Positions 19,720 through 42,337 of a stretch of 64,000 nucleotides of DNA are shown here, piece by piece; within the stretch, counting starts at the first letter, position 1; every line of letters begins with the position of its first letter. This DNA is from Tubulanus polymorphus. Taxonomy: Eukaryota; Animalia; Nemertea. The notes beneath the pieces are model-generated. The model worked only from the letters and a program-made list of their open reading frames with translations. It was not told the DNA's origin and did not search any database. The stretch covers positions 4,588,001-4,652,000 of the forward strand of contig NC_134035.1 in the NCBI RefSeq assembly GCF_964204645.1. The letters are read 5' to 3'. The position numbers and the translations under genes are program-made.

Positions 19720-20652
19720 AAATAAAAAACCAACATATGTCGAAATGGAATGTAATATCATATATCATATCGTATATCGTTTATCGTTGTACGAAAGAGA
19801 AAAAAAAAACGAATCGTCAGAGAAAAAACTATTTTTTCAAAAAAAACAACTGACAACTTTGCGGTCAGTTGAGGACACTGGCAACAATGTCACGATCGCC
19901 ATCGTACCTACGGTAACTAGATCTAAGCGACGACCGATCGGCGACCTCGTCTGTGTGTGTGTGACCATCGCCGGTCGACGATCCTGTGTTCAGTGCGCTG
20001 TGAGTTCAATGTGTGTCGTGCGACCGTCTCGCCGCGCGCGAGCGCGGTCGGTTATCGTAAATATATATTACTAAAATTACTACTCGGTGAACTCGAAGAC
20101 TTTTTCTCTCTAAGAAACGAAAACAAAAAAAAAGAAACACTTTGTTGCGCGCGTGATCTGACGATTTTTCCGGTTTCGAATCGGTCCTCTGATTTGGGCA
20201 GACGGGCGCCGCCTCCGATAGACGCGCGATACGAGGAGTGCTCCGATCGAATTGGCTCCAGTAACATCGGGCATCGTCTGCACTGCTCGTTTTTCTGCAC
20301 TAAATACATATACAACGAGATATACATATATATATATATATCATTGGTTGTTCATATTCGTAAATATAACACGCGTGTGCGCGCGCCACCGCTTAACGGC
20401 GTGCACGCCACCAAAAAAAAGTCATTCTACTTTTTTTCGTCTTTATTTTCACTTCGTGGCAAAATCCGACCAGGAATCGTCATCGTCATCGTCATCATCA
20501 TCGTCGTCGTTGTAGTTTCATAGTCTCTACTACGCTAGTATAGTTCCGTTTCGCTGACGCGTGCGCGCACGTCGTCGCGGTGTGCGCCACCGCCGAATGG
20601 CGTGTACGACGCGGTGTGCGTGCGTGCGCGTTTGGTGTGTATTTGTGTATAG
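19720..20652 (-). other. Probable Onecut 3' UTR (end uncertain)
   Basis: Follows the TAA. Minus-strand AATAAA at 20442-20447; a GATAAA variant near 19780 is followed by a U/GU-rich tract near 19720-19735. Confidence 0.5.
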
Positions 20653-20927
20653 TTACGTTTTCGGCATGCTCTCGCGATTGTTGTTGCCGTCCTCGTCCTT
20701 CCACTTATCCAAAGATCGTCTGCGGGCATTCATGAAGAAATTGGCCACCGTGGAAACCTCCAATCCCAGCTGTTGCGCTATCGTTGCCTGCATCTCCTTG
20801 GATGGGCGCTTCGTCTCTTTGAAAATTGCATGGAGTGTGCGTCGCTGAATATCGGTGAAAACGAGACGCGGTTTTTTCGGAGCTTTGTTTTCTTCGGCCT
20901 GACTTTCTTGCTCTTTCCTCTTGCAAG
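20653..20927 (-). CDS. Onecut: ONECUT/HNF6-family transcription factor, terminal coding exon (linker + homeodomain + C-terminus); CUT exon presumably upstream, outside the window
   Basis: Manual translation after acceptor ttttctccgttcgtgttttgcag (AG at 20928-20929, phase 1) gives (A)CKRKEQESQAEENKAPKKPRLVFTDIQRRTLHAIFKETKRPSKEMQATIAQQLGLEVSTVANFFMNARRRSLDKWKDEDGNNNRESMPKT*. It has the ONECUT-diagnostic F48/M50 homeodomain (NFFMNARRR) and the same phase-1 intron before ACKRKE as vertebrate ONECUT genes. Confidence 0.97.
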
Positions 20928-21168
20928 CTGCAAAACACGAACGGAGAAAACGACGTTAAATTTCCGGAAAAAAAAACAAACATATCGCATAATCAGGGTA
21001 CATCGACGTGTGAGTTTCGTAAATATATCACAAAAGCTGAAATGAACGATGAATGAATGAATCCTGAAACGAAATATGATCGATTAATAATTCAATGCTG
21101 CAAAGTTTTCATCGATGTGTTGTTGTTGGTAGCGAGCTATGAAGAGTTCGTCTAACTCTAACGTCCAG

Positions 21169-21278
21169 GACCCAGTTCCACAGTTGTGAGTTAGAGTTAA
21201 GTCTGAGTTATAAAGTTAGTTCATTTTCAATGAGTTAACCCAGAGTCAAATCTTAACTCAGAACTGTGGAACTGGGTC
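21169..21278. mobile_element. Palindromic PIF/Harbinger-like MITE (family A)
   Basis: TIR gacccagttccacagtt / aactgtggaactgggtc with a 3-bp TSD CAG (21166-21168, 21279-21281). It is inserted into the end of a family-B element. Confidence 0.75.
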
Positions 21279-21500
21279 CAGTTGAACAGTGGTAACTTAA
21301 AGTCAAACGATGAACTGAAATCATAAGACTGGTCTTAAGTTGTTAGATAGGCTATAGAGCAAAAATGAGCTTTGAGTCATATTGACTGGTTTTAAGTTGA
21401 AAGATTAGCTATAGTACCTAGATAAGCTTACACTGGTCTTAAGTAGTTGAATTGGCTTAGACTGGTTTTAAATCTAAGCGTCAACTGTGCAACTGGCTCC
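21279..21500. mobile_element. MITE family B (ccagttgaacag ... ctgtgcaactgg, internal taagactggtcttaag repeats)
   Basis: Inverted termini; related copies at about 30770-30885 and 63010-63262. Confidence 0.6.
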
Positions 21501-21597
21501 TGGGAGCTAGAACCACAAAAAAATTCAGTACAAGATTATATTGTGATTTGAGATGCTGAGTCAGGCATCAGCTAGTTTCAATCACGACAAACTTCTT

Positions 21598-21677
21598 CGT
21601 TCAGTAAACTGATCAGTGGAAACTTTTAGTTCAGTTAACCGATCAGTGGAAACTTTTAGTTCAGTTAACTGATCAGT
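21598..21677. repeat. 30-bp tandem repeat (about 2.7 units)
   Basis: Unit gttcagttaactgatcagtggaaactttta. Confidence 0.85.
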
Positions 21678-22274
21678 CCCGAGTTGAGAGATGTCATGTT
21701 TAGAAAACCCCACAAAATCAACTACATTATAATAAAAGCCAACCCCGACGAAAAAGAAAAAATTACATATTTTCTTCACGATGAAATTTTTCATCAAGAA
21801 TAGCTCTCTTGACATTTTTGCCAGTTAAAAAAAGAAAAAAAATTTCGCCTTAGCAAAATTTCCAGAACGTTCGTCGTCCGCGCGCGTCCATTTAAAATAA
21901 TGACGACGACGTCGGAGGCTGCAGCTACGCATTCGATATCGATCGACAGATTACTAATGATTGACTGAGCAGGAATTTCGTCCGTTGTTAATTGTATCGA
22001 TCGCGCGTCGAATCGCGTCTGATTTTTTGAAACCCAATCCATGAAAATAATTGAACACCGTCCGCGCCGCCCTTAATCTTGACACTAAACAGTATCCGAT
22101 ATGACACTGTTGACGTCGACGACGACGACGGAATTAAGGCCGCACAAATATCACCGCGCTAAATGCAAACTTAAAAACCGAATACCACCACCCACCCTCT
22201 CCCAGATCAAAACATATTGCAAATGTCATCTGCGAGTGTATCCGTAAATGCTATTTAGGGTTTCATCTAGCGAA

Positions 22275-22490
22275 GGCAGCTAAAATACCATAGTTGGCAC
22301 GTGATGATACCAGCTACCATAGTTCATATCTGGTGATGGCAGCTACCAGATACCTGCACCAGATGATGCCAGCTACCAGATACTTTGTACCTGATGATAC
22401 CAGCTACCAGACACTTAGCCCCTGATGATGCCAGCTACCAAATACTTTGTACCTGATGATGCCAGCTACCAGATACTCTGTGCCTGATGA
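22275..22490. repeat. 30-bp tandem repeat (about 7 units)
   Basis: Unit ctgatgatgccagctaccagatactttgta. Confidence 0.85.
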
Positions 22491-23394
22491 TGAAATTCTA
22501 AATGCATGTCTTAGCACAAATTTCTGTGCATCTATTGATAATGCGGCAGAAACCGAATAATTACCGATGACTGGCCTTACTCGACTCAGCACGCGCTGCC
22601 GTATTAAACGTCACGCTGTTATTTGGCCGAGATTTCTCATTTTTTCTCGCATCTTTCTTTCCCGCGGTGGTGTGCTTCGTCAGGTCGTCGTCGTCGGTTA
22701 TGATCTCTGTTAACAATGGGTGTGGTTCTCATTATTACTCAGTAAGACAAACATAATGTACAGAAAAACACACCCCTATCAACCTATCTATTCACTGTCG
22801 TTAGCCGGTGGATAAATGCGTAGTAAAGTAGCTTCATTTAGGATCAAATTTCGCGAAATATTCTTCTCTTTTTTGGTATGAAATCCAGGGCGACTTCTAT
22901 ATTTGAAGAATCAATTTGCAGAACTTATACCCGCGAAACCGACACCACTTCGACAATTGCGAGTTTAATTCGACTCGAAAGAGTTGACACCAGTTCATTT
23001 CCTATTACTTCAACTCGATAGAATCGAGTTCAACTCGTAACTGTCCATCCGAGAGCCGGAATAGAGAATCACGTCCGGTGCACCGTGAACTCTACCTCCT
23101 TCACCCGTGTAAGATAACCGTATGATTGAATGCAATTACACCGGGGCCGTGGAATCTTCGCTCGCAAATTGGATCGCGCCACTTAACATCCAAATCCAAT
23201 TAACAAATTCGCTAATAATCGGTTAACTAATTAAAGCGTTAATTGAAGCGGTGGACGGACGATTAATTAAATTCGTAAAGAGCCGCTCGATGACCTAGTT
23301 ATCTATCTATACACGCGTACATCTGCCCGACGGCGATCTAAACCTGACAACCCCGACGAGGAGACAGGCGCGCGGAGGTGGCGCAAAAATACGA

Positions 23395-23750
23395 GTTTCG
23401 AATTTCGATCGATCGAAAGTAAACCTAGAATTAACTGAAACTTCAATAGATTTCTTCGCTCGTCGAATAAACAGCAATTGTTTTTTGGCGGGATGGAAGT
23501 AAACCTGGAATCGACTGAACTTCTATAGACGTGAAATCCCACAATTGTTGAAAGACTAAAAAGATTCATCTAAAATGGAGGTTCATTCTGAAACGATATG
23601 TCAAAACTACTGGGCCTGGTTTCATAGACCGAGTACCGAAGAGTGAACCCCTGATTTCGCGGGAAGCAAGCAAACCTGGAATCAACTGAACCTCTATAAA
23701 TGTCGAATCCCACTGTTGAAAGACTAAAAAGATTATCAAAAATATTAGAA
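23395..23750. repeat. Three dispersed copies of aaacctggaatcgactgaacttctataga...
   Basis: Copies near 23421, 23501 and 23672; the last two extend to gttgaaagactaaaaagatt. Confidence 0.7.
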
Positions 23751-25075
23751 ACATTTTGCGTGGTTCAGTCTAAAATGATACGTCAAACTGCCTGAAATAT
23801 TTCGAACACTTCGAATAAACATTTTAGTCTTTCGACAATTGCTGGATTTTACACGTATCATTTCGTCGCGGATATTGTGATCTTACTGATTGAATAAACA
23901 GCAATCGTTGTCGCGGGATACAAGAAGCTTCGACGTACCACTGGAAAAATACCCCATTGAAATATAATAACTACTTAATCGATTTTCTGAATTCCGCAGA
24001 AATTATAATGAAAATTAAGCTGATTAAGCAGTTTATGACGATGATGGACAGATTCCGACCAGATGGACCGCACTTCAAACGGTACCCGGTTGAAAAACAC
24101 TCAGCGCGGCAAGCTCTCTTCATCGAGGCTCGCGCGAGCGAAGGGTCTCTCCGGTAAAATTGTACCCTTCACACTTCAGACAATCTGTTCTTCGCAGGGA
24201 ACCTGTTGTGTTGGAGTACAGCTCTCAAGCCATAGCACCGCGCTACGACGACGACCGACTCTCTACAGAAAATCTGCTGTTTTTCCCTGATTGTAACCAA
24301 CAAAACACTAAAGTGTTTCGGCAACGAGGACACTTTCTTCTACTTCTCTGACGACACACGCGGGCGTGACGACATTTATTTACATATTAACGCAGATGAA
24401 TTACGCGGCCAATGAAAGAAAGTTCATCCGTGTTCAAACGCGCGGTTCAGAAATATTCGAACCGTTCTATTCGTATTTGTTTACCTCAAAAGATTGCGAT
24501 TCTTTTCTTTTTTCGAGCTTTCGTTCGTCGCGTTTATCATATCGCATCATATCGAGATCTTAACAGAAAAACGCGCTACGACGACGCTATTAGATACTGA
24601 TGAACTGAAGGGCGCAGGGAAAAGAGAGGGCGTTTTATCAATTACTCATCGGGGGGGTAAGGGGGGTTACAGAATGAATGAACAATGACAATGAAAATAT
24701 GAGTATTCTTTTTAGTCCGCTCTATTTGTACTAATTCATTAAGCGCGCCCTTCTTTCTAACGAGAGAGAGAGAATGAGAGAGAAAGGGAGAGATCGTATT
24801 AATCGTGCATCGAGGTAATAATAACTAAAGCGGATCTGATTTAATATTTCATGTGTCGTTTGTGTAGCGAGCTGCACCGCGCCGCGCCGCGTCGTGCGGG
24901 AGTTCGGCGTAAAAAATAGCTCATTGTGCATGATAGTTATAATAAAGGTGTATCTCGGAGGGGAGCCGCTCATCGCAGCTGATGATCAAGAGAAGAATTT
25001 TCCGTACGATATTAAACCGTATATCGAAACGAAGGCTGAACAGCGTTTTTAAAGGGGTTAAAAACGAGAAAATAC

Positions 25076-25510
25076 TGGATCCAGTTCGACAGTTCCATTG
25101 ATTAGATTTGACTCGGAGAATACCTCATTGAAAATGAACCGATTACAACTCTTAACTACGGGCAACTCAAAACTGTAGAACTCACATTTTACACGAGAAA
25201 CTGGGCCCAGTTCCACAGTTGTTAGATTTAACTCCGGTTGAAATCAGTTCATTTCCTATGTTTTTAACTCTGGTCAACTTTAACTCACAACTGTGGGCCC
25301 AGTTAGAGTTAACTCTGATCTCGGGATCCAGTTCCGCGATTGTGACTTAAAATCAGTTCATTTTCGATGTTTAAACTCCAGGGCCCGGTTCCAGAGTTCC
25401 GAATTAAGATTTGACTCCGAGTTAACTCATTGAAAATGAACTAACTTCAACTCTAACTCACAACTGTGGAACTGGGTCCTGAGTCAAATTTAACTCAGAC
25501 CAGTGGAAGT
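25076..25510. mobile_element. Cluster of 3-4 adjacent or nested family-A MITE copies
   Basis: Repeated (gg)cccagttccacagtt, cattgaaaatgaac and aactgtggaactggg motifs. Confidence 0.7.
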
Positions 25511-27744
25511 GGCTCCAGCAATGTTGTTTCAACGAGGTTTAACTGTATTCTAAAGGGGTGAACTCTTTTATCAGATCGGAGAATCCAGTTTGCCTCCAAT
25601 CGTACTCTATCATTGGCCACATGACCTTTTGGAGAGTCTGAAACCTCAATTACGGCAAGGTGGTCTGATTCGGATTCTTGTGGAGACAACTGGAGATTTC
25701 GGATGCCATGAAATAATGCAGATAATGGCACTGCAAAATGTTACATTCAATATGAGAAACTGGCTCTGGCAAATCAAGGATTGACAGGTTTCGAGACGGT
25801 TATAAGAAGTGACCGAGTGATTGTCGGTCAGTTCGGGCAGATTTTTTTTTCATCGATGAGCTCTCCCGCCATTGCGAGCGAATGTCGCGTCGAGCCACAC
25901 CGGATATCGCTGAAACCAGGAAAAAAGAAAACATCCGAATAAATGGGGCTGCGCGACATGTCGGCTGAACGCCGGGACAAGACGAGTTCGATGTTCGCGC
26001 TGAAACTCCGGGTAAATGCCCAGATGACACGAGCACGAGGGACAAGACTCTGCCATTAAACCGTACACGGACCACCTGCACGTCGACAATCCGCGATCGC
26101 TGTTTAACGGTTGTCATAGCAATCGCGGCAACAATGAAAACATGACAACGACGACGACACATGTTATGTATCAGACAGGGATATACGGTACATCTTTTAC
26201 CTTCCGTCGTCGTCATGTCGCGGGCGATGGATGAAATCGGTAATTCACGTTCCTCCTTCCGACTATTAACGATAAAAATAACGCGCCGAGAATCTGACTT
26301 TTATGGATGTCAATCAATCTCGGAGAATCGCAGAGAACGGGTTGATTTAAATATAGCTTATGAATTTATAGCTATAGAAATAGACCCGTCTACCTGAATA
26401 ATCGTATCTAGTTTTCACCAGAAATGAGAGTACGTAATTCGACATCACAAAATGTAATGGTAGTTTAATCGAAAATGAACTAGAAATTAATGCGATTTTT
26501 AGAGCATTTCGATATATTTTGGCAGTAGTTGAGCTCTTAGAACCGAGTAAGAAACCACCTTCGAAAAGTAGTTGTAGTCATAGCCTTTTAGCATTTCTTT
26601 AAAGATTTTGGACGAGGGTCTGCAGTTTCATGAACAAGTTTACGCTTTAAACGGTGAAATTTGAATTACTGTCCTAACTGAAAAGATGAAGTACCCGAAA
26701 AAGCAACGAAACCAAAATTTTGAGTCAGACATTTTTCGAAATTCGTCCGCTCTTTCCGTGGTTTCTATGTCTGATTTCTATGATACGACATTAATGAGTT
26801 TACCCCGGGCAATAACTTCGAAAACGCTGAACCGGTTGTTTTTATCATTTTACAGCGAATAGCCGGGTCCCCCGGTGCTGTTTAATCACAGCTTCGGGCG
26901 GCGGGTTCGCGCGTGGCGCCCGCTGAGACAAGACCGACGCTTGTGCATGTAGCAAGCCGGCTAGCGAGTTCGCAGAGGGGGTAGTACGCGTTGAGGAGGA
27001 TTCAAAAAATTGACAACAATTCCTCCGGTCAAACAGAAGCCATTAATTAATGCGGCGACCGACGAAAAACAGTCGTCGCGTCGAAATCCGGAAGCTTAAC
27101 AAAACGTACAACGACGACGGCTTAACAGCTACGCAAACAAAACGCTAACTACATTAACGTCGCGCTAATCTCTATTTTAGTGAAAACCAAATCCCTCCGA
27201 GTGACAATTACCGACGAGTCGATGTTAGCGTTGAAGATGGTTTCGGTCGTCGTTGTCGTTTTCTAGCTCGGTGGATAGTGTGAGAACGTAAACAGCGGGT
27301 GCCAATGAACCACGCGACGACGGTTACCGGTGGTGCTCACGGACCCGAGACATCTCGCTGTCCATTACGCCGTCACCGCGATCGACGCATCTGATTAGTC
27401 GGTTCATTAATTGATTGTGTCGTTGCCGGAATTCGACACCGGTTTATATATACACGGTCGCTGGTCGCTTCACGCCGAGGGCGTTCAGGCGTATCGCCGA
27501 AACGGTCGCGCCGTCGATGAAATGAGAACCGTCCAGGTGGACTGGTCGGTTTACGGTGGTGATGTCCATTAGACACTAGATTGGTCTCCTCTGTCTCTCT
27601 CACTCTCTCATCACTCGCAGGTCTAGAAAGTGATGATTTTCACACTGGACACACTTGCGAAACCCGCATTGTCGTGTTTTATGTATATACATAGGATCAA
27701 TCAATACAGAATTGTGTAGATAAGATAATCTCAAGATCCATAAG

Positions 27745-28110
27745 TGAGGAGAGGATAGGAGAGAGAAATAGGGAGAGAGGAGAGAGGGAGGACAGAAAAG
27801 AATGATGGAGTGAGAGATGGAGAAAGGTGATGGGTGTGGAGGCAGGAGTGAGGAGAGAGAAGTGAGGGAGGAGAGAGAAGGGAGGGAGGAGAGAGAGGTT
27901 AGGGAGGAGAGAGAAGTGAAGGGAGTGAGGGAGAGGAGTGAGAGAGGGGAAAGAAGTGAAGGGAGTGCGGGAGGGAGGTGAGAGGTAGGGATGGAAAAGG
28001 ATGATGGAGTAAGCGAGGGAGAAAGGATAGGAGTGACTGGAGGATGGTGGAGAAGAGAGATCGAAAAGGATGATCGGGTGAGGGAAAAGAGGGAGAGAAC
28101 AGAGGTGGCA
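27745..28110. repeat. Long polypurine (GA-rich) low-complexity tract
   Basis: About 360 bp, nearly all G/A on the plus strand. Confidence 0.9.
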
Positions 28111-31100
28111 ATAAACCATTTTCAACTGTCGTCTGATCTGGATTCTGGATTCTGCGTTGATATTCTCAACGTTTCGCGCTAATACACGAGAAGCGAAGCG
28201 AGTGCTTCACTCGTATCGGTAATAATAACACGGCTTAAACAAAACCCTGTCCTACGAGAGAGAGAGAGAGAGAACGAGATACAGACACCTTTTACTGCGT
28301 CGTCATCATCCGTTCGTTCGGCTGTTCGCGAGGAAATACCTGCTAAATCGCTCATTTCCTGTTTTTCTTAACGCCGCGCTTTTGACTCATCAATGCGCCG
28401 GCTAGTCGAAAATAACACCGGGATATGCGCGCCGCGCCGGCGTGTATAGTTATAAGAGCGATTTTCATGGCGACGACTGCCATCTTCATCACGAAGAGAC
28501 TCGGACGTAGATGTTAATCCTCGGGGGCTTCCTAAACCGTTTAATAGATAGCCGACGATGCGAAATCGCCGGTTCCTCTAATTTCATCCCATGAACTCTG
28601 AAGGAAAGCTCGTCTTTCTCTCTCTCATGTCGCGGATTAACACATTTTTTCCATTAACTTTTTCATGCGAGATTTGCATAACCGGCCGGTTGAAATTAAA
28701 CCCTTCCGACATGGCCGTTCCGAGCCGACGCTTAAACCGGAGCGAACCCGCCGACTCGAGAAAGCATTGGCTCTCGAGATATTCGCGGAGCCACCCCGAA
28801 ACTAGATACATGCAAGAAGACATAAAAAATGGTATCATGCTATGATTGATATCGAAGGCGATTGAACCGATGATGATACTGGTTAATTCAAACACCACTG
28901 ATTTTAAGCCTTAATGATGAAGAACAGAAGAATATTCACATCGATTCACACAAACTACGACCAAAGTGCGGCGATTTTCAAACTCTCTTAGTTTCATTTC
29001 AAGCACGGCTTCACGCTTTAAGAACATAATAACAATGATAATAATAATCATAATTCACTTTTTATTAAACTTATTAGGATATACAAGTTAGATGTAATAG
29101 TGGTTATAGTGAATATCAGTTAGATGAAGGAAGCAGTGAAAGCCTAGAGGCTGTACAGGTCACCTGTTAAAAGAGTACAAGTACAATGACACTTCGAGGG
29201 ATATTCACATCAAAACAGCTGAAACAAGCGCCTCCGACGAGCTCATAAACGGACATCAAAAAAAAAAAGAAGAAACAACCAGTCATAATTCCTCGGTCAT
29301 CCCTCGAATCAAGGAATGCTCGAGACACGTCGGATGATCACCGAAAACCCGAGAGAAATAAAATACCGGACCGTCGAGGTCGATAAACACGTTCGCAGCC
29401 AGAGTCGAATGTAACTGTAATCCCATTTATGACCGGTTTCGTTGCTTGCATTATAACATACGCGCTCGGATTTACCTGCGCTGGAAATGCAGAGCGCGGG
29501 CCTCGACGAGCCGATTCCTAAATCGTCGTACGAGATTTAGCGTACACCTCGCTAAATGCCGGATAATAACCCGAGTATGCCTTCAAGTGCGAACTGCGAA
29601 AACTTTTTCTAACTGCGGACCAGAATACACGATATCTTTAATTGTAATATTTATCACCCAAAATTTGATAGTAATTTGACTCAAAAATAGTAGATTAATT
29701 GAAAATGAACTATAAATGAATCCGATTTTGAGAGAAGTTTGATATTCTTGGGCTAAGGTCATTGTCAGGTCTGTTACTGACGCTGATTATAATATTATGA
29801 TGAAGAAAACTACGAACACGACCGAAATATCTCACCAGATGGCGTTACGAACAAGTCTGGCATACTTGACAAGAATTCAATTTTGAATTTACATCCCTAG
29901 AAATTTAGATCGTTGCAAAGTCCATTTTGGTCGTAAAGCTTCTATTCGAATTCACAATAGCCGCAGTATGTCAGCATGAACTGGAACTTCCAGCAAAATA
30001 CATGCTTTTCATTTTCATCTTGCGAAATCTGGTTTAATGCGGAGAATGAATGTTGGAAATATGGACAAAGACATAACATCATCGCCAGATTCCCGATTTC
30101 TTTTTTTATGTGTTTCATCTAAAGATAGAAATGGCAGCCTCTAGACACCAGCAGATACCAGCAGACTGCTGCTGCCACTATAAAACAGTCTTCTCTCCTG
30201 ATGATTTCTGAGAGACATACATTTCTTTCTCCACCACCGTCGTCCGCCGTCACTGCTGCCGCTGCTGTACGGAATTGAAGAATTATGTTTGCGTTCGTCG
30301 ACGGTTAACGAGGAATTCACAATCGGCTCGGATCAACGGCAACACTGTCAGTTCCATGTAAAATATTGTCTGATAATTGCCAGCGGAAACCTCTCTCGGG
30401 ACACGTTCGCTCTCGAATTTTCAAACAGGACTGACTGACTGCCGAGCGGCTCCTCCGCTGCATAGCACTTACATACAGCAAACATATATACAAAATCTTA
30501 TAACGGTGCGTTCACTCGGGTTATCGGTCGGAGGAGAAGTCCTAGATTCATAGACGGGCTCGAGGAGAAAGTGTGGCTCCAAATAGTACGGAGACTACAA
30601 TTTGAGCCTTGCACGAACTAGATGATGGGCAACACTGACTCTGCCACAAGATGGCACCTCCGAGTCAGACACCTCTACACGGCTCCTCTGAGTCAGACAT
30701 GAACGAGTTCAGTTTCCTTTCAACTTTGAAACTTACACAAAACACACAAGTCTGCGGTTCAATCTTCTGGAGCCAAGTTACACAACCAGACTCAAGACCA
30801 ACACAGGCTAAGACCATCTTAGTTCTACAGCCTATCTAATAACTCAAGACTCGTCTCAAGATTTAAGACCACGGACTGTTGGCAACCCACTCAGATCTAT
30901 GCATAATTTCTATTCGTCTTTCATCGAATTCGAAAAAATTTGCAAAGATTCTAATAGATCTTAAAAGAAAAATGGATGCTAGCTTGCCGCAGTAGCATCG
31001 CCGTGTCCTTATTGCCCTTCAAGTGTTTACAGGTTCAGAATTATAAGCTGATACTGTTCGTATCACCTTGAAAGACATAGCCATAAAACTCCCGCTAAAT

Positions 31101-34100
31101 CGCGTCTCTACGGAGGCTAAGGAAAGGTCGAGTGGGGCCTGGGAAGCAGCTCGGCGCTCGCGCACGGGGAAACCCTGGTAGTAAATCCCACCACCTATTA
31201 TCAGATTGAACAAAACGAAGGATGAAACCTATTTTCAGATTCTCGCAATCCTGGACACGAGGTTAATGGGATGAGTCATATTACGAGACGCCGAACCGGC
31301 CGCCACTATTCGGCGGCCTCCGCGTAACGGTTACTTCATCTTTTCTTCATCTCTTTTTTCGTCGTCGTCGTCGTAAACGAAGCGGTTCGTTTGAACGAGC
31401 GACCGCCGAACGACGCCGAAGCGCCCGCGGGTAATTCATCCCGTACTGAACGGGGAACGACGACGCCTTTAACTGTAATTGAAATGGGTGTCAAGTTAGC
31501 CGCGGTGATTGTGTTCGTCGTGTCTCGCGATCCCGAGTCTTATATACGAACGCGCGCGCCGTAAGATTACGCCGGCGTCCGGGTATCCAGTGTCGTTCGG
31601 TTAATTTCGCCGATCCGGCCACCGGGGACCGGCGCCGCGCACGCCGGCTCGACCCGGCTTAAAAATTACGCCGTGCTCGGTACACGCACGTAAGGTACCG
31701 GCGTACCCGTCTCGGCTGACGCATACCTGGCCGCGAGATTAGGATTACGTTGATAACGTTCGGGATTTGATTCGGATGGTTATGAGGTCGTTGATGAAAT
31801 GGCAGCTGGCTGCTACTGCTACCGCTGCTGCGATGATCACAATGCCTTCGGAGAGAAGATGAGAAAAAGGGTCTACGGAAAGACAAGCCAGGTGTTTATA
31901 TTTCTGATCCTCCGTTAACGCCGACATATTACGCACGCGCTGAGACAACAGATACCGAGCGACTAAATAACCGTAATAAAACTATCAGGGAGATTATCTC
32001 TTAATCTATCTTAATCCCTTACACTCGGGTTGAGGTTATCCGAGCTATGATAATTCGACTTAAACCTCTATTATATACCTATGAACAGATACGTATTATT
32101 ATTTAGAACCGTGATGATGATGATGATGATGATAATGATGACGATGAAAGCACTCGCGCGACCTGTCGTTAAAAAGAAAACACGGGCTCCTTTTCGTTTA
32201 ATTTCGAATAAATGAAAAACACGAGCGCAAACAGCTACTGATATAAATAATTGCGTCTTTGAATACGGTGTTCGGCGTGTTGACTCAACTGAAAATTTTA
32301 CTTTCTCGTTCACAAAAAGCGGCCATTGTTGCGCGGTTGTCGACGAACAAATATGTACAGTTCGTAAGCAAACATGGCCGCCGCGCGCCGGCCGACGCCG
32401 TTTCCTTCGAAATCGAGAAACGTTTTTGTTTATTCGGCATGCTGTTACGCGCGCGCGCGCAATTCCACAGCGGTGGCGGCGGCGTCAGCGGCTTCGTCCG
32501 TCCGTCGTCCGCGTTTACGCCGACGTGTCGAACGAAAACGCAAATATTTAATTTGCATTAATCGTCGGAGAATATTCGAATGCGTTTCTAAGAGACCGCA
32601 CCGCGTCGCAGGGTACCGCGCCGCACCACACGATGGTGTGTTAAATGGCGCCATTAGAATGATATACCGTCATTTACCCCTTACACAACTTATCCCCGTT
32701 TTTATAGTTCCTAAAGTGCTAAATTCAGATAGGATTGCCAAATTCACCCATTTACAAATTCCCTGATTTAACAGGTTTTTGACAAATTTTGTAAAATTCC
32801 ATAAATTTTCCCAAATTTTTATTCCCCAAGTTTTCAGGTCCAGCAGCCAACCCCTGTGTTGTTTGTTTCCGATCTCTAATGATGGCAGTTTTAGTCCACA
32901 GCCCGAACTGGTTAGATTAACTAGCACATTTTCAGTAGGGGCGTGACGGGGGTACTTGTCATTCAACTGATGTCATAGTCAGTCATAGATACGCCATTAC
33001 TTTTTAAAAGCGACGAGCGCGGGGTTCTAGCTTCAACAGATGACTATAATACCTCAAATACGTATCGTAATCAACGCCGAACATGTATTTTCTTATTCTC
33101 ATCCTCTAGTCGGCCGCTAAGCCTCGGTCGTATCTGAAAACGGGGGCGAAAACAAATACGAAATCATGCGAGCGTCTCCGGAGCCATAACTCTCGCCGTT
33201 TCGACGTCGCGCGAATACCGCCGGGAACCACGCATCGGCGCCAGTTGCCAGGCAACTCGGCCATCCATCTTAGTTTCGGACGATTGTAACGTTTCGGGTC
33301 GCGTTCGAATCGCTGTGTAAACCGACGCGCCGCGCGAGTTGTGTGTGCTCAAGAGAAGTCGGCGTTTTCGCGCCGCGGTACCTGACTCGAATTCGAACGC
33401 CGACTTTTCCTTCGCCCGGAGCCGCCACCGCCACCGCCGCCGCAGTGGCCGCCGGCTGGTGCCGATCGCCCGGGAGATGAAAACGCGAATAAAACATACA
33501 TACACGACTTTACGCGGGCGTTTCGCTCGAACAATGTCTGTCGCTATTTTTCAAACGAAGTCGTCGACGATGATTATATCCCGGTGACGAGCGACGTTCG
33601 TTGAAGAGCTTTCGAAATTATCGACGCATTAATAAGTAAAGTAACGAGAGCGCGATCGACGCACAGGTGATGGGACAACGATGTCACACTTGACGGAGCG
33701 CCGCGGCGACACTTGAAAGCGAAAAAGCTTCTTCCGTGTCGCGCGGCGCTTACTGAAAATTTCATGACCAATTTGCTAGTTTGAAAAACGGTTTTTTTTT
33801 TAAACCGGACCAACGTTCAAGAGTCATCGTCGTAACGGTGGGCGTCGTTTTCGAGAGTAGCGAAGGAAAGGGAAAGGGCGAACTTTGAATAATAGAAGAA
33901 GTCCCACAATTCGAATTTAGTACGATAAAATTTATCGAAAACAAATCCCATTTCCACTGTTGACTTACAGTCATCATCAGTAGGACTAACTCAGGCGTTG
34001 ACTAAACAACCATCATCAGCCGACATCATCATTCCACCTGATGATGGCTGTTAGTTAGCATTCACGGAATAGCGTGTTTATTCGACTACTAAAATCGTGA

Positions 34101-34435
34101 ACTTAAATCGTCATCTTTATCGTGAACTCAAGTACAGTCATTTAACCTTTTGCGATTTTAACATTTCCAAACCTATTCCGGGACTGATCTTCAAATTTTC
34201 CATCGGGCCAAATATCCAAATCGCCTTAATGAGGAGCTCACTAAGGTAGAATTGAACATTTACGCGAAATAGACATTAACTATCTAGACCACACTTTTAA
34301 AATTCCGAAGCTTTTTCATGGCTTCGGACACAAAACTTGAACATCCATAAACTTTCAAAGTCTCGAAACAATGATCAGCAATTGCCATAACTTTTGCAGG
34401 ATTTTCTTGATAAATTAACCGAATTTTTGGGACCA

Positions 34436-34919
34436 GTACAAACCCTATCTCCCAGACCAACAAGGAGCCAGCAAATCATTTCCCATTACAAAATCTAAAC
34501 TAAAGTTTTGATTTTGAAAAAAAAAACCAAACGTGACATTTCGAAAGCAGAGGGTGGTACAAACCCTATCTCCCAGACCAACAAGGACCCCGCATATCAT
34601 TTGCCATTACAAAATCTAAACTAAAGTTTTGATTTTGAAAAAAAAACCAAACGTGACATTTCGAAAGCAGAGGATGGTACAAACCCTATCTCCTAGACCA
34701 ACAAGGACGCAGCAAATCATTTCCCATTACAAAATCTAAACTAAAGTTTTGATTTTGAAAAAAAAACCAAACGTGACATTTCGAAAGCAGAGGGTGGTAC
34801 AAACCCTATCTCCTAGACCAACAAGGACGCAGCAAATCATTTCCCATTACAAAATCTAAACTGAAGTTTTGATTTTGAAAAAAAAAACCAAACGTGACAT
34901 TTTGAAAGCGGAGGGTGGT
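34436..34919. repeat. 120-121-bp tandem repeat (4 near-identical units)
   Basis: gtacaaaccctatctcc... starts at 34436, 34557, 34677 and 34797. Confidence 0.95.
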
Positions 34920-36324
34920 TACCAGTTACAACTAAAAATACACACATGAATTTCATATTTCGTATTTTCTGGTGATGGTGGTGGATATCAAATATTCATT
35001 TCATATCGCTTTTTTTTTCAAATTATCGTCGATCATTGAACTGTCGTTTGATGATAGATTCATCGCTTCAAAGACGCGTAGATTTTGAACGCGAATCGCG
35101 TCGATAATTTTTGGGTGTCGACGTGCGCGAGCGCGCGGCGGCGGCGACGACCGGGCGTCATCGAAATTCAAGTTGGCCGTTCGTCGGTAATTGATCGCGC
35201 TTCGTAACCCTAGACGCCCGAAAAACTTTCCGCCCTGAATTTTTTTTTCTCGAAAAAAACTTTTTCCCCAGATCGGTTTGAACGATAATTACAATCGATC
35301 GCTCGGCGATATCTATAATAATAATATTATTATTACAAAACGGAACGTTTCAAATTTTTTTTGCGAATAAAAATGCTCGCGCTAAGAATACTCGCGCGCG
35401 CGTGCAAGCTATTAAACTATCAAATTCAAACCGAGCGAAATCGCTTTATCGCGAAAAAAGATCGAGTATAAGCATCGACGATACGATGGTAAAAAAAGGT
35501 TTCTATAACAGAAAAAAAATTCAAATTGTTTCAAAATACCCGATAACCATTAATATCAGTTAAAAAAAACAAACTATAAGTAAACGATTAGAAATACAAT
35601 ATCTAAGCTTTCGACTGCCGCGGATAATTTTCATGAAATGGCAAATTTTTTTTCGGGAAACGATTTTCCAACAATTTCAACGGTTCATTCAGTTCAGCGG
35701 CATCGGGATTAATTCGTCAGGGCGAACACGCGGCGGTGAAAGGGTTAATAAGTCCGGGTTGCCTCGATTAATAGTCGAACGAATTCGTCGTAGGAATTTG
35801 ATTAACCCCCTCCCCTCCGGTTAAACCGATCGATACGAATAAACAATTAAGAAGCTACTTTGACATTTTTCAAACGATAAAAGTTAATAATAATTTCTTT
35901 CTCGAGTTAATCATTTATATATGATAAACACGATGATTGGATATGTACGGCGTATGAGACGCGCTCGTGGTGTGCCTCCAGGCGACCGACGATGAATTCC
36001 GTATAATTAGAAAGAAAATTTCAAAGGCAGTTTTCACTTTTTCTATCAAGTCTCTTCGCGTTGAAACTGACGGGCACACCCTGTCGTCGTCGCCGCCGCC
36101 GCCGCTGCTGCCGTATGTTCATGTACGTAAACTTATACGGCGCATAGTTTCAGCAAGACTACACGCCCCTATATCATGACATGATGACATTTCGATTAAA
36201 ATCACCTTCAAATTTGCGCTAGTTCAAAATAACTTCACCCTAGAGTTTGTCTAACATATATGCAAATGCACTGATAACATATACAATGGTATTTCTATGA
36301 TATCTTAATCTATCTAAATGATAT

Positions 36325-36735
36325 TAGGGTTTTCCCTGTGGTAACTAAAGGTGCAAGTGCAAAGACATTTTATAAGGGATTTTCCACGGTATCTAAAGGT
36401 ATGAACGGAATGCAATGACATTTTACAAGGGTTTTTCTGCGGTACCTTTAGGTACTAATAGAACGCAATAACATTTTATAAGGGATTTTCCGTGGTATCT
36501 AAAATTACTAGTAGAATGAAATGACATTTTGTAAGGGTTTTTCCGTGGTATCTTTAGGTACTAATAGAATGCAATGACATTTTATTAGGGATTTTCCGCA
36601 GTATCTAAAAGTACCAGTAGAATGAAATGACATTTTATAAGGGTTTTTCCGTGGTATCTTTAGGTACTAGTAGAATGCAATGACATTTTATAAGGGTTTT
36701 TCCGCGGTATGGAACGGTACTAGCAGAATGCGACG
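36325..36735. repeat. 53-bp tandem repeat (about 7-8 units)
   Basis: Unit gacattttataagggtttttccgtggtatctttaggtactagtagaatgcaat. Confidence 0.9.
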
Positions 36736-36921
36736 TCATCTTATCAGGGTTTTTCTTTGAGGAGGTACTAATTGGGAAGCACTGATATCATTTTTCCCCA
36801 TTATGAGTTTTAGGATGTTGAGCTGGCGTCGCACTGTTGTGGGGTATTTATACCCAAATAAATAAGACCGCGGCAGAGAACGATAGCGAGTTAGTGTAAG
36901 TGATAGAGATGTGGTTTTTAC

Positions 36922-36960
36922 CTTGGAGAGCGGATTGCTGTAGGTGAGATTGAAGATCTT
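36922..36960 (-). CDS. Candidate 39-nt alternative cassette exon of Onecut, encoding EDLQSHLQQSALQ in the CUT-homeodomain linker
   Basis: Minus strand reads gtttcgtttgattttatgcttgcag|AAGATCTTCAATCTCACCTACAGCAATCCGCTCTCCAAG|gtaaaa. It has a long pyrimidine tract, a length divisible by 3, and is open in phase 1 (the phase of the Onecut intron). Confidence 0.6.
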
Positions 36961-37731
36961 CTGCAAGCATAAAATCAAACGAAACATCAAAACAGAGCAC
37001 AAACAAAGAAGACTATAAGTGACAAATAAAACGAAACAAATCAGAAAAAGCAGAGAGAGAGAGAGAGGGATAGAGACAAGGGTAATGGTATATACAATAG
37101 TAGCTTATTGCTTCTATTAAGAGATAGGAACATTTTATGAATGCAGCAATTAGGGCTAAGGTTTCGTTACGACATATAAGGAACTAGGACTCCGTGGTGC
37201 AACATACACAGAATACCGAAACAAGACAGAACACAAATCTTTTATAGCGGATTGTCTTAAATAGGCGACGCTTCGCATACGCAACCGAACAGGCACGAAT
37301 CGTCGAAACGAAAGACGCCTCGTCGCTGCCCGGCGTCCCGGCTGCGCTTTTTTTTTCGTATAACGTCGCCGGGAACGTATCTTTAAAACGGTTTATCTAC
37401 GATCATCGACACTACCTGCAGGGATAAACAAAAAATTACCTAACTACGCGCAATTCATTAAACATTCGAAAAACGCCCGAGGCGCACACACGCGCACACG
37501 AGGGTATTTTAATAACAAAATAGATCAATTTATTCGCCTCTTTCTGCATCGTTGCACACGCGGCCACACAGCCGCTGAAGAGCACTAAAATGCCAGGAAT
37601 GCCGAGACGCGAAATACCGAGAACGAGTCGTACACGGCAGGATGTTCAGTCGCATGAAGCCGAAACATCGTGGCCATCTGCCTGACGAGGACGACTACAG
37701 CACGAAGCTAAAATGACGTGGCTGTCCAACT

Positions 37732-38489: not shown

Positions 38490-38749
38490 CAATAACGCTA
38501 GTGCCACCTAGTGGAACCTTGATTGAACATGATAGACTTACAATCACACTAATGCCACCTATTGAATCCTCAATCGCCACAGTAACCTTATTTATAACAA
38601 TATAACTAGCACCACCTTGTGGATACTCAATTGCCACAGTAACCTTACTTACAATATAACTAGCACCACCTTGTGGATCCTCAATCGCCACATTCACAAT
38701 CACACTAGGGCTACCTGGTGGATCTTCAATAGCCACACCAGCCTTATAC
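38490..38749. repeat. 54-bp minisatellite with CTCF-like motifs, left part (about 5 units)
   Basis: Units ctag(t/c)(g/a)ccacct(a/t/g)gtggatc.tcaat.gccaca..., the same family as 41332-41550. Confidence 0.9.
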
Positions 38750-41331
38750 GAATACGAATACGAATATTTATTACACTCCAACCATTTCCATGGTATATGG
38801 AGGAAAAGAAACAGTATTTACAATTATTTACAAAAACAGTAGATAAAAGCACTTTGAAACATAACAAACGTTATTTACAACATACTATTTACACACACTA
38901 CCGGAGGGATCTATATACATCCAGACCTAATTTGATAAATTTAGCAAGTTTAAAAGTTGGATTTTTTAAAACATCAAGATTCCGAAAGGTATTTGAATTT
39001 AGGTAGCTTTCACGGAATACGGTAAGTAATTTACAGTCAAAAATGAAATGTAGTTCGTCGCCTAAAACGTTACAGGTGGGGCATAATCTATCGGTTCTCG
39101 GTAGATGGAGATTTGACAATTTATTTACAGGTAGGAGATAAGACCCAATCCTGAACTGGAATAAGCTGGTCACTAAGTCGTCATCAAGCCGATTTATATA
39201 GTTTTCAAATTTGATATCCTTCTTATATTGTCTAAAATTAATGTATAACGGGTTATTATTTAGCCTAAATTCTGTCTCTTGCACATGCTGATCACGGAGT
39301 AAACGGTGTAATTGTTTTGGAGAAGTCCTAGAGTTTACCATAGATTGTTGTGTCCATATATACGAAAGGCCACAGTCATCAAAAGTCTTCTTAATAAATA
39401 ACAGCCAGGGGCTCTTAAACCTATCATTCAGATATAAATTATAAGATATCTTATAGAGAATTGAACTAAGTTTACTTTGTTTGCACTCTATCGTTTTGAC
39501 CCAAAAATTAATCATTCTACGCTTTACGCTTATATACATAGGATAACGTCCTAACTCCGCTAATACTTGAAGGTTATGGGAATATTTTGTAACTTTCATG
39601 ATAATTTTACAAAATAAACAGTGGAGGTTTTCTAATAAGTCAAGGTTTTCATATCCCCAGATTTCGCAACCGTACAACGCGATAGGAGCGACGCACATGT
39701 CAAATAGTTTAAACATTACATCTACTGGAAGTTTCAAACGTCTGCCCTTTTGAATAATAGAATACATAGCTTTCATAGCTTTATCATAGAGAAATTTTTT
39801 TGCTTTAGCGAAACTACCGTTCCAATTGAATTTCACTCCGAGATACACATAATCCTCAACTAACTCTAACTCCTGATTACCGAACATGAATTTCGAAATA
39901 CGCTTAATCCTACTTTTACTTCGAGCGAAGACTAATATTTTAGTTTTATCAACATTCACCGTGAGGCCGTTGTCGGCGCAATATTCAAATAATGTATCCA
40001 AATGTGACTGGAGAGATTCCTCATCTTCAGCAAGAATGACTGTGTCATCCGCATAAAGGATAATGAATAAGTTAAGTAAAGTCCCTAGTTCTGGGTCACA
40101 ATTCACATTAAGCTTTTCAATATACGACAAAGTTGGTTTACCGCGCGTAGCAAAAAAGTCTTCAATATCGTTTAAGAATAAGGAAAATAGGATAGGTGAT
40201 AAATTTTCACCTTGTCTTAAACCTCTATCAGCAGCAAAATACTGTGATGTGTTTCCGTTAAATTGAACACATGATTTCACCGAATTATAGATATTTTTAA
40301 CTACGTTCAAAAAATTCCCCGTAATGCTACTCTCTATCAATTTTCTCCATAATGTAACCCGGCAAACCGAGTCGAAAGCCTTCTTAAAATCTACAAAGGC
40401 GCAAAAAAGTCTTCTTCCTTGACATAAGTACAATTCGACGATTGTTTTCAACGCGTAAATATGGTCAGTAGTAGAATATTTTGGTCTAAATCCGGCCTGT
40501 GCTTCACTAATTATATTGTTTGAATCGAGAAAAGTTGACAGCCTTTGGTTAAGGATACTTGTGAATAATTTACCAAGACAGCTAACTAGTGTTATACCTC
40601 TATAATTATCAGGATTAGTGGGATCGCCTTTCTTTTTAAAAACAGGTTTAATTATCCCTATAGACCACGTCTCCGGAACATGTCCAGTCTTAAGAACTAA
40701 ATTAAACAGGTTTCGTAATATATTAACTAAGCACGGATACCGACTAAATTTTAATAACTCATTAATGATTCCATCTATACCAGGTGCCTTATTGTTCTTA
40801 AGCAATGAGATAGCTTTCATTACTTCATCAGCTGTTATGTCGCAGTTTAAAATATGGTTGTCATATACAGGAGGATCATCATTCTGTTGTTCAATATTAT
40901 CGTTCCCTTCGTTTACACCATTTAAGTCATTTAATTGCATAAAGTGTTCAAGAAAAATATCAATATCAATATTAGCGTCCTTAGTTTTTGCATAAGTTGC
41001 AGAATTAAGCATAGCCCAATACTTTTTCGGGTTATTGACTTCACAATCTCGTAGTTCTTTAATAAAAGTTTCCTTCTGTTTTCTCTTACTTTCCCGGATG
41101 ATTTTTTTATATTTCTTTGACGAGTTCTTGAAAGCATCAAAGTTAGAAGGGGTGGGGCAGCCTCTATATCTGTTTTTATTATAATTATAATCTTTACGCG
41201 CATCCCTACAGCTACGATTGAACCACTTGTTATGAACCGGGCTTCTACGTCTTCTATTTTTCCTATTGAGCACTAAGTTACATTCTTCGGCACTTAACAC
41301 CAGGGAAGATACAAATCTATCAGTGAGTTTG
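38750..41331 (-). mobile_element. 5'-truncated non-LTR retrotransposon (LINE, RTE-X-like), recent insertion
   Basis: Uninterrupted RT-coding frame. The 3' end is AATAAA followed by a (TATTCG)3 tail. It is flanked by a TTATAC duplication (38744-38749 and 41332-41337). The endonuclease domain is absent. Clade assignment is inferred from the C-terminal motifs. Confidence 0.9.
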
Positions 41332-41339
41332 TTATACAT
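38898..41339 (-). CDS. Reverse transcriptase ORF2 fragment of the LINE (RT domain + C-terminal Cys/His motif, no endonuclease)
   Basis: Motifs KAPGIDGI, NYRGITLVSCLGKLF, QAGFRP, FVDFKKAFDSV, GLRQGENLSPILF, LYADD (40044-40055), YLGV, and C-terminal CPTC..DELHFIFDC. The N-terminal AIEDPPGG repeats in the track ORF come from the flanking minisatellite. Confidence 0.92.
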   Translation of the reverse strand: MYNKLTDRFVSSLVLSAEECNLVLNRKNRRRRSPVHNKWFNRSCRDARKDYNYNKNRYRGCPTPSNFDAFKNSSKKYKKIIRESKRKQKETFIKELRDCEVNNPKKYWAMLNSATYAKTKDANIDIDIFLEHFMQLNDLNGVNEGNDNIEQQNDDPPVYDNHILNCDITADEVMKAISLLKNNKAPGIDGIINELLKFSRYPCLVNILRNLFNLVLKTGHVPETWSIGIIKPVFKKKGDPTNPDNYRGITLVSCLGKLFTSILNQRLSTFLDSNNIISEAQAGFRPKYSTTDHIYALKTIVELYLCQGRRLFCAFVDFKKAFDSVCRVTLWRKLIESSITGNFLNVVKNIYNSVKSCVQFNGNTSQYFAADRGLRQGENLSPILFSLFLNDIEDFFATRGKPTLSYIEKLNVNCDPELGTLLNLFIILYADDTVILAEDEESLQSHLDTLFEYCADNGLTVNVDKTKILVFARSKSRIKRISKFMFGNQELELVEDYVYLGVKFNWNGSFAKAKKFLYDKAMKAMYSIIQKGRRLKLPVDVMFKLFDMCVAPIALYGCEIWGYENLDLLENLHCLFCKIIMKVTKYSHNLQVLAELGRYPMYISVKRRMINFWVKTIECKQSKLSSILYKISYNLYLNDRFKSPWLLFIKKTFDDCGLSYIWTQQSMVNSRTSPKQLHRLLRDQHVQETEFRLNNNPLYINFRQYKKDIKFENYINRLDDDLVTSLFQFRIGSYLLPVNKLSNLHLPRTDRLCPTCNVLGDELHFIFDCKLLTVFRESYLNSNTFRNLDVLKNPTFKLAKFIKLGLDVYRSLR

Positions 41340-41550
41340 AATTGCACTAGTGCCACCTGGTGGATCTTCAATAGCCACAGTTACCTTATCAACTATATAA
41401 CTAGCACCACCTGGTGGATCTTCAATAGCCACACCAGCCTTATACATAATCGCACTAGTGCCATCTGGTGGATCTTCAATCGCCACAATTATCTTATCAA
41501 CTGCACAACTAGCACCACCTGGTGGATCTTCAATAGCCACACCAGCCTTA
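41332..41550. repeat. 54-bp minisatellite with CTCF-like motifs, right part (4 units, alternating A/B variants)
   Basis: ctag...ccacctggtgg cores at 41347, 41401, 41455 and 41509, an exact 54-bp period. Confidence 0.9.
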
Positions 41551-42337
41551 CATCATCATCGTTTATTTCTCGAAGTCAAAACATGCAAAAGCCAGCAACA
41601 CGTCATCATTCAAACGAACTATAATTCTCTAAATAAAAACGGTGACGTGGTCGGTCGCTGGATGGCATCATACGACGATGACAATAATAAAAATCATAAT
41701 AACGCGCACGGCCACGTTCGTCTGCCGCTGCCGCCAGTTTACGAATTCGCCTGCGGGTCTCAATTTGTGTCACCGACAACGAGACCCGCCTTTAACGATA
41801 AAAACGCGCTGATATTCGACGCGGAAAATGTCAGAGCGCGTTCTCCGAACAACGGCGGCGAGTTTATTTATATACAATCGTATTTACACGGCGCTCTCGG
41901 TGATGATGGACCACGCGATGGGTGTAGCCTTTATCGCGCCGATGATGTCGCCTGTACCGTCGTATTAAAAGCTTCTATATATAGGAATCAGGGACGATCG
42001 CTCCGTTTTTCAAAGGCCACGCGAGAACCAATACCGTCACGCCAAATCAGCATTTTCCATTTCACGCGACATACCGGCGCTGCTGACCTTCGAGTATTTT
42101 CGTACATACTTCAACTTCGAGTAATTTTGTGATAACAAACGCACGCTTCGATTTAATAATAATACACTTTTATGCGACATACCTCGCTACGAATTTCAGG
42201 ACGAAAGATTTTTATTGAATGTTAAAAAACTTCTCTTAATTTGCATGGTCATTAGTTCTTTAGTTTATATTAGTTTCATTGGTTTATGTTTATGCTAAAG
42301 AACCGAGCACTCAAGGTTACAATTAAGTAACCTCTTA

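Follow-up and report, generated by a model that had tools for sequence, protein, structure and literature searches.

A 39-nucleotide exon in the Onecut gene of the nemertean Tubulanus polymorphus, most likely one module of an adjustable spacer between the CUT domain and the homeodomain

Introduction

Throughout the animals, neurons are among the cell types that Onecut factors specify, and the two DNA-binding domains of these proteins act together. The ONECUT class is characterized by one CUT domain and, C-terminal to it, a homeodomain that carries Phe48 and Met50. Which arrangements of binding sites can be bound should depend on how long the tether between the two domains is. In the rat, the Onecut1 isoform HNF-6 beta carries a 26-residue linker insert, and this insert alters its DNA-binding preference relative to that of HNF-6alpha. 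Within the very long intron that separates the CUT and homeodomain exons of the nemertean Tubulanus polymorphus lies a 39-nt stretch with the outward appearance of an exon. Is this stretch a genuine coding exon of Onecut, and if so, what might it contribute to the linker between the two domains? A preliminary description, made from the 64,000-nt stretch of DNA analyzed here (the window, C11:4588001-4652000), had proposed that it is an in-frame cassette exon that lengthens the linker and that its splicing could be neural. Positions without a contig prefix are those of the window.

Results

Onecut is a single gene in the T. polymorphus genome and is encoded on the minus strand, with the window inside its CUT-homeodomain intron. 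The CUT exon is absent from the window; a Pfam CUT search of the whole genome placed it at C11:4721514-4721741 on the minus strand, 69.5 kb from the window end. In a word-indexed protein search, the CUT exon was 100% identical to XP_074660456.1, a 520-residue RefSeq protein of T. polymorphus named "one cut domain family member 2-like." The open frame of the CUT exon terminates in LRLA, followed by G/gtaagc, so that the intron is in phase 1; both the LRLA end and the intron phase, which had been assumed in the preliminary description, are therefore the real ones. The coding part of the last exon occupies positions 20653 to 20927 on the minus strand. This exon starts at 20927 after ttttgcag, opens with ACKRKE, continues into the homeodomain, and ends with the stop codon TAA at 20655 to 20653. 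Pfam domains in XP_074660456.1 are CUT at residues 304 to 379 (116.7 bits), then Homeodomain at residues 447 to 500. Translation of 20653 to 20927 gives the recognition helix NFFMNARRR with Phe48 and Met50, both of which are invariant in the Onecut protein alignment. With a CUT domain, a homeodomain, and the Phe48/Met50 pair, the gene belongs to the ONECUT class. Elsewhere in the genome, three CUT domains lie in tandem at C2:2384405-2386890, which is probably a Cux gene, and a single weaker CUT match lies at C10:534651-534851.

The CUT exon and the homeodomain exon lie 112,576 nt (112.6 kb) apart, and three small linker exons split this distance into segments of 46.8, 21.1, 28.5, and 16.0 kb. 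Exon 2 (48 nt, C11:4674684-4674731) encodes VDATVKSEGGSGISYQ, and exon 3 (54 nt, C11:4653503-4653556), which sits 1.5 kb past the window end, encodes GRYPCSGEQYTSMRLSGA; both are on the minus strand, in phase 1-1, with canonical splice sites. The 39-nt stretch is exon 4 of 5 (positions 36922 to 36960, minus strand, phase 1-1) and encodes EDLQSHLQQSALQ, an exact tblastn match to residues 417 to 429 of XP_074660456.1. It is separated from the homeodomain exon by an intron of 15,994 nt (20928 to 36921, minus strand) and from exon 3 by one of 28,542 nt, whose in-window part runs from 36961 to 64000 on the minus strand and contains a reverse-transcriptase retroelement. All five Onecut exons lie on C11, their splice sites are canonical, and their phases agree; each exon was matched singly to XP_074660456.1.

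XP_074660456.1 contains 47 additional residues exactly between LRLA and ACKRKE, the final 13 from the 39-nt exon and the other 34 from exons 2 and 3. A protein in which precisely these 13 residues precede ACKRKE thus bears out the central proposal, namely that an in-frame exon extends the linker between CUT domain and homeodomain in an invertebrate Onecut. The predicted junction sequence LRLA-EDLQSHLQQSALQ-ACKRKE held on its ACKRKE side but had to be revised on the other: two linker exons precede exon 4 in the annotated mRNA, so that its upstream partner is exon 3 and not the CUT exon, and the junction reads ...RLSGA-EDLQ... instead of LRLA-EDLQ. Because exons 2, 3, and 4 are all in phase 1-1, with a carried-over G before and a G at the end, any subset of them keeps the frame.

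In minus-strand order, the exon consists of an acceptor (...tgcttgcag), a 39-nt body running from 36960 to 36922, and a donor (CAAG/gtaaaa), and it is in frame and without stops inside the intron between the CUT and homeodomain exons. The phase-1 G of the preceding exon and the body together give the stop-free peptide, and the trailing G completes the Ala codon of ACKRKE at 20927. The 3' splice region (36961 to 37012, minus strand) contains the acceptor AG at 36962 to 36961, an AG-free zone of 50 nt, and two UGC motifs at 36969 to 36967 and 36965 to 36963. A (TC)n tract, read directly from the sequence, lies at 37052 to 37069 (minus strand), about 91 to 108 nt 5' of the acceptor; it is outside the AG-free zone, with an AG at about -53 in between. 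The 5' splice site, CAAG/gtaaaaacc (36913 to 36921, minus strand), is without the consensus G at +5. The acceptor, the stop-free body in phase 1, and the donor are all present at the place originally described, as are the roughly 50 nt without AG, the two UGC motifs before the acceptor AG, and the (TC)n tract farther upstream. On a rough splice-site matrix, the acceptor of exon 4 scored 7.3, compared to 9.4 for exon 2, 8.7 for exon 3, and 9.7 for the homeodomain exon, and the donor of exon 4 scored 7.4; by this measure, both splice sites of exon 4 are the weakest among the exons of the Onecut linker region. The pair of UGC motifs near the AG is found in exon 4, while exons 2 and 3 have none. 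In the CUT-homeodomain intron as a whole, 1.3% of all AG and 2.4% of the pyrimidine-rich YAG sites have two TGC no more than 18 nt away.

Exon 4 and its flanks are single copy in the 268-Mb genome. On this ground, an origin of the exon as a piece of a repeat or transposon was rejected, despite the presence of a reverse-transcriptase element and tandem repeats close by. The retroelement in this Onecut intron comprises an 884-codon open frame at 38901 to 41552 on the minus strand with a Pfam reverse-transcriptase domain (126.7 bits), and it is flanked by 54-nt tandem repeats at 38555 to 38692 and 41332 to 41550, whose 54/108-nt units translate into VAIEDPPGGAS-like sequence. A 53-nt tandem repeat (36358 to 36755, 7.5 copies, 80% matches) begins 167 nt downstream of the exon 4 donor in the gene sense, and no GCAUG motif was seen between this repeat and exon 4.

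How far the splice signals by themselves identify an exon was assessed by scoring every symmetric stop-free AG..GT stretch of 21 to 150 nt with a rough splice-site matrix. In the 43 kb of intron within the window, the 39-nt exon ranked first of 1795 such stretches. Over the whole CUT-homeodomain intron it ranked 10th of 4841, with exons 2 and 3 in ranks 1 and 2; the nine higher candidates on the gene strand correspond to exons 2 and 3, variants with other ends included, and to three further places. The opposite strand, used as a control, gave five candidates that scored as high as the 39-nt exon. Given this rank and these five equals, the splice signals alone are not beyond chance for so long an intron, and the status of the stretch as an exon rests on the RefSeq model, the sequence signals by themselves being insufficient. 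Two unannotated symmetric stop-free stretches in the same intron, of 24 nt (C11:4701695-4701718) and 27 nt (C11:4694421-4694447) on the minus strand, took ranks 3 and 4; since equally high scores occur on the opposite strand, both may be due to chance.

Exon 4 is included in the RefSeq model of XP_074660456.1, and as an exon already annotated there it is not a new discovery. A search of sequencing runs with the homeodomain exon and its downstream flank as the query returned four runs from the assembly's own study and one from 2015. In the region from 19800 to 21299, contigs of two assembly-study runs extend from 20886 to 21074, and so pass from the exon into the intron with no loose end at the 20927 acceptor, which indicates that the four assembly-study runs behave as DNA. 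None of the homeodomain-exon words was present in the 2015 run. A search of the protein database with the linker plus the homeodomain for Tubulanus transcript fragments or other isoforms found none; the best match had 89% identity and was confined to the homeodomain. A very high-copy short repeat is located at 21165 to 21281, about 240 nt upstream of the homeodomain exon acceptor, where depth, summed over contigs, climbs from about 28 to >100,000 in each of the four runs and many loose ends occur at the borders.

Onecut proteins of other animals were compared at the same position. Insert length ranged from 0 to 82 residues among 47 Onecut proteins from molluscs, a brachiopod, chelicerates, insects, and vertebrates, and the insert was always located between the invariant LRLA and xCKRK. 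Every insert starts with G, V, A, D, or E, as the carried-over G predicts, and the intron position therefore appears to be shared. Several species, molluscs and chelicerates included, have more than one linker form, and linker cassettes at the LRLA/xCKRK intron are widespread in protostome annotations. In the nemertean Lineus longissimus, where the Onecut gene spans 102 kb, eight annotated isoforms (X1-X8, XP_064635267-XP_064635275) draw in varying combinations on five linker modules, which are 6 to 22 residues long. A comparison of the 13-residue peptide of exon 4 with other Onecut linkers returned nothing significant, and the best matches fell outside linker regions. This lack of a linker match fits an independent origin of exon 4, without proving one.

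The final 15 intron bases before the Tubulanus homeodomain exon (20928 to 20943, minus strand) read RSCFA in frame, and Lineus isoforms X1, X3, and X4 have coding sequence for LKSCFP at this position. Tubulanus cannot use an upstream acceptor of this kind, because its homeodomain exon is preceded by an AG-free zone of 107 nt. The RSCFA stretch may be a conserved 3' end of the intron or the relic of an alternative acceptor.

The likely conformation of the linker was modeled with AlphaFold2 for residues 304 to 512, with use of the Onecut protein alignment. The CUT domain and the homeodomain fold in the model, and the linker between them (model residues 85 to 142) has pLDDT values of <50 and is predicted to be disordered. 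A helix at model residues 114 to 126 coincides exactly with the 13 residues of exon 4; with a pLDDT of about 35, it is only a hint.

Discussion

Taken together, the gene anatomy and the RefSeq protein lead us to regard the 39-nt stretch, with good though not complete confidence, as a genuine coding exon, the fourth of five in Onecut, and most likely as one module of an adjustable spacer between the CUT domain and the homeodomain. In the gene model, three symmetric exons of 48, 54, and 39 nt, lying 16 to 47 kb apart, add 47 residues between LRLA and ACKRKE, and each of them can be skipped without a change of frame. Comparison with Lineus, molluscs, rat HNF-6 beta, and skate Onecut1 suggests that exon 4 would serve as one flexible spacer module that lengthens the tether, and the freedom of the two domains to reach their respective half-sites would then vary with spacer length. 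The same comparisons suggest that exon 4 may be skipped in some transcripts and that the length of the spacer may affect DNA binding.

Might the exon instead be a chance pseudo-exon, an artefact of prediction that is absent from real mRNA? Plain chance in a very long intron was dropped as the main reading once XP_074660456.1 showed the same 13 residues, and we now consider it very improbable. The scan speaks for it, with nine symmetric stop-free candidates above exon 4 on the gene strand and five as good on the other, as do the absence of a match to the 13 residues in other linkers and the absence of junction reads in the DNA-like sequencing runs. Against this, we infer that the RefSeq model was built on spliced reads. 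The linker has no detectable homologue to steer an alignment of proteins, and a model free of transcripts could have linked the CUT exon straight to the homeodomain exon in frame. A predictor working from sequence would have had no reason to take rank 10 and pass over ranks 3 to 9, and the choice of exactly this candidate plus the top two is hard to explain in the absence of spliced reads. A different question is whether a genuine exon 4 is constitutive, with all three linker exons always included and a single fixed long-linker Onecut that undergoes no isoform switch. RefSeq gives one Tubulanus product, with all three linker exons and no isoform label, which counts against alternative use, and the same annotation pipeline arrived at eight isoforms for Lineus. 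However, low expression of the gene may leave too few reads for alternative models, the UGC motifs and long AG-free zone are typical of regulated exons (PMC8797185), and relatives combine linker cassettes. The frame-neutral phase of the linker exons, the splice sites of exon 4 as the weakest of the set, and the isoforms of Lineus and other protostomes were counted for alternative use. On balance, a constitutive exon seems to us somewhat unlikely, and the prospect that exon 4 is used alternatively is a little better than even.

The neural proposal goes further: exon 4 would be a cassette included specifically in neurons, and its inclusion would require the eMIC domain of Srrm234. In the fly, eMIC-dependent exons are short (median of 31 nt), with long AG-free zones, UGC near the 3' splice site, and UCUC-rich tracts (PMC8797185). 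Exon 4 fits this code in its length of 39 nt, its two UGC motifs no more than 9 nt from the AG, and its 50-nt AG-free zone; a UCUC tract lies farther upstream. The genome also encodes an SRRM_C/eMIC-like domain in two neighboring exons (C2:27842320-27844731, minus strand) that contain the motifs KRRIT and ARKRPIPYYRPSP. The two pieces score 23.2 and 20.4 bits over profile positions 9 to 55 and 55 to 67, each alone under the 27-bit Pfam cut-off, and the locus is probably the Srrm234 orthologue. The details of the splice region are less favorable, however. The (TC)n tract, which the code would place between the branch point and the UGC, lies beyond the AG at about -53, and the AG-free zone is undistinctive, at 50 nt versus 87 nt for exon 3 and 107 nt for the homeodomain exon. 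One of the UGC motifs is merely part of a UGCAG acceptor, as it is in the homeodomain exon that is common to every linker form, and the subthreshold scores of the single SRRM_C matches weigh on the same side. The neural reading draws on cis features and genome content, and we regard it as coherent but unproven, and as unlikely. More speculative still, and in our estimation quite unlikely as a whole, is a scheme in which the CUT-homeodomain intron would have housed combinable spacer exons since early in bilaterian evolution, with exon 4 switched on in Tubulanus neurons by the eMIC domain of Srrm234 and with spacer length tuning the choice of paired half-sites in each cell type.

In the gene model of this nemertean, the tether is assembled from three tiny frame-neutral exons scattered over 113 kb. 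With exon 4 already present in RefSeq, little is gained for this exon itself. What may merit further attention is the wider picture in protostomes, where combinable linker modules share a single conserved intron. Such modules were not described in the literature searched, where the linker was treated only for rat and skate, and a 2023 review of CUT homeobox genes (PMC10515288) does not mention Onecut linker isoforms.

Several known systems offer points of comparison. Lineus, the nearest annotated relative, belongs to the same phylum and has its short linker modules at the same insertion site. Among them is a 13-residue module that, as exon 4 does, begins with E and can lie directly before ACKRKE. 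The modules of Lineus are without significant similarity to those of Tubulanus, and their annotated combinatorial use contrasts with the one Tubulanus model. Exon 4 resembles the neural microexons that depend on eMIC (Srrm234, SRRM3/4) in being short and in having UGC beside the acceptor and a long stretch free of AG (PMC8797185); UCUC motifs also occur upstream, beyond an AG. At 39 nt, it exceeds the classic microexon limit of 27 nt. The insert of rat HNF-6 beta, a precedent that is cited in a preprint on the little skate (10.1101/2025.07.30.667746), is 26 residues long versus 13 for exon 4, and it is encoded by the only linker exon in rat, whereas exon 4 is one of three in Tubulanus and is known here from a gene model. 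In the little skate, the Onecut1 isoform LSOC1X2 includes a 144-nt spacer exon that encodes 48 residues in the same intron; RNA-seq shows both forms, and inclusion of the exon is developmentally regulated (10.1101/2025.07.30.667746). The skate spacer is also disordered, its exon appears to be in the same phase, judging from the reported exon-start triplets, and its 48 residues compare with 47 in Tubulanus when all three exons are included. The two differ in that the skate adds this length with one exon proven by RNA-seq, while Tubulanus does so with three exons known from a gene model.
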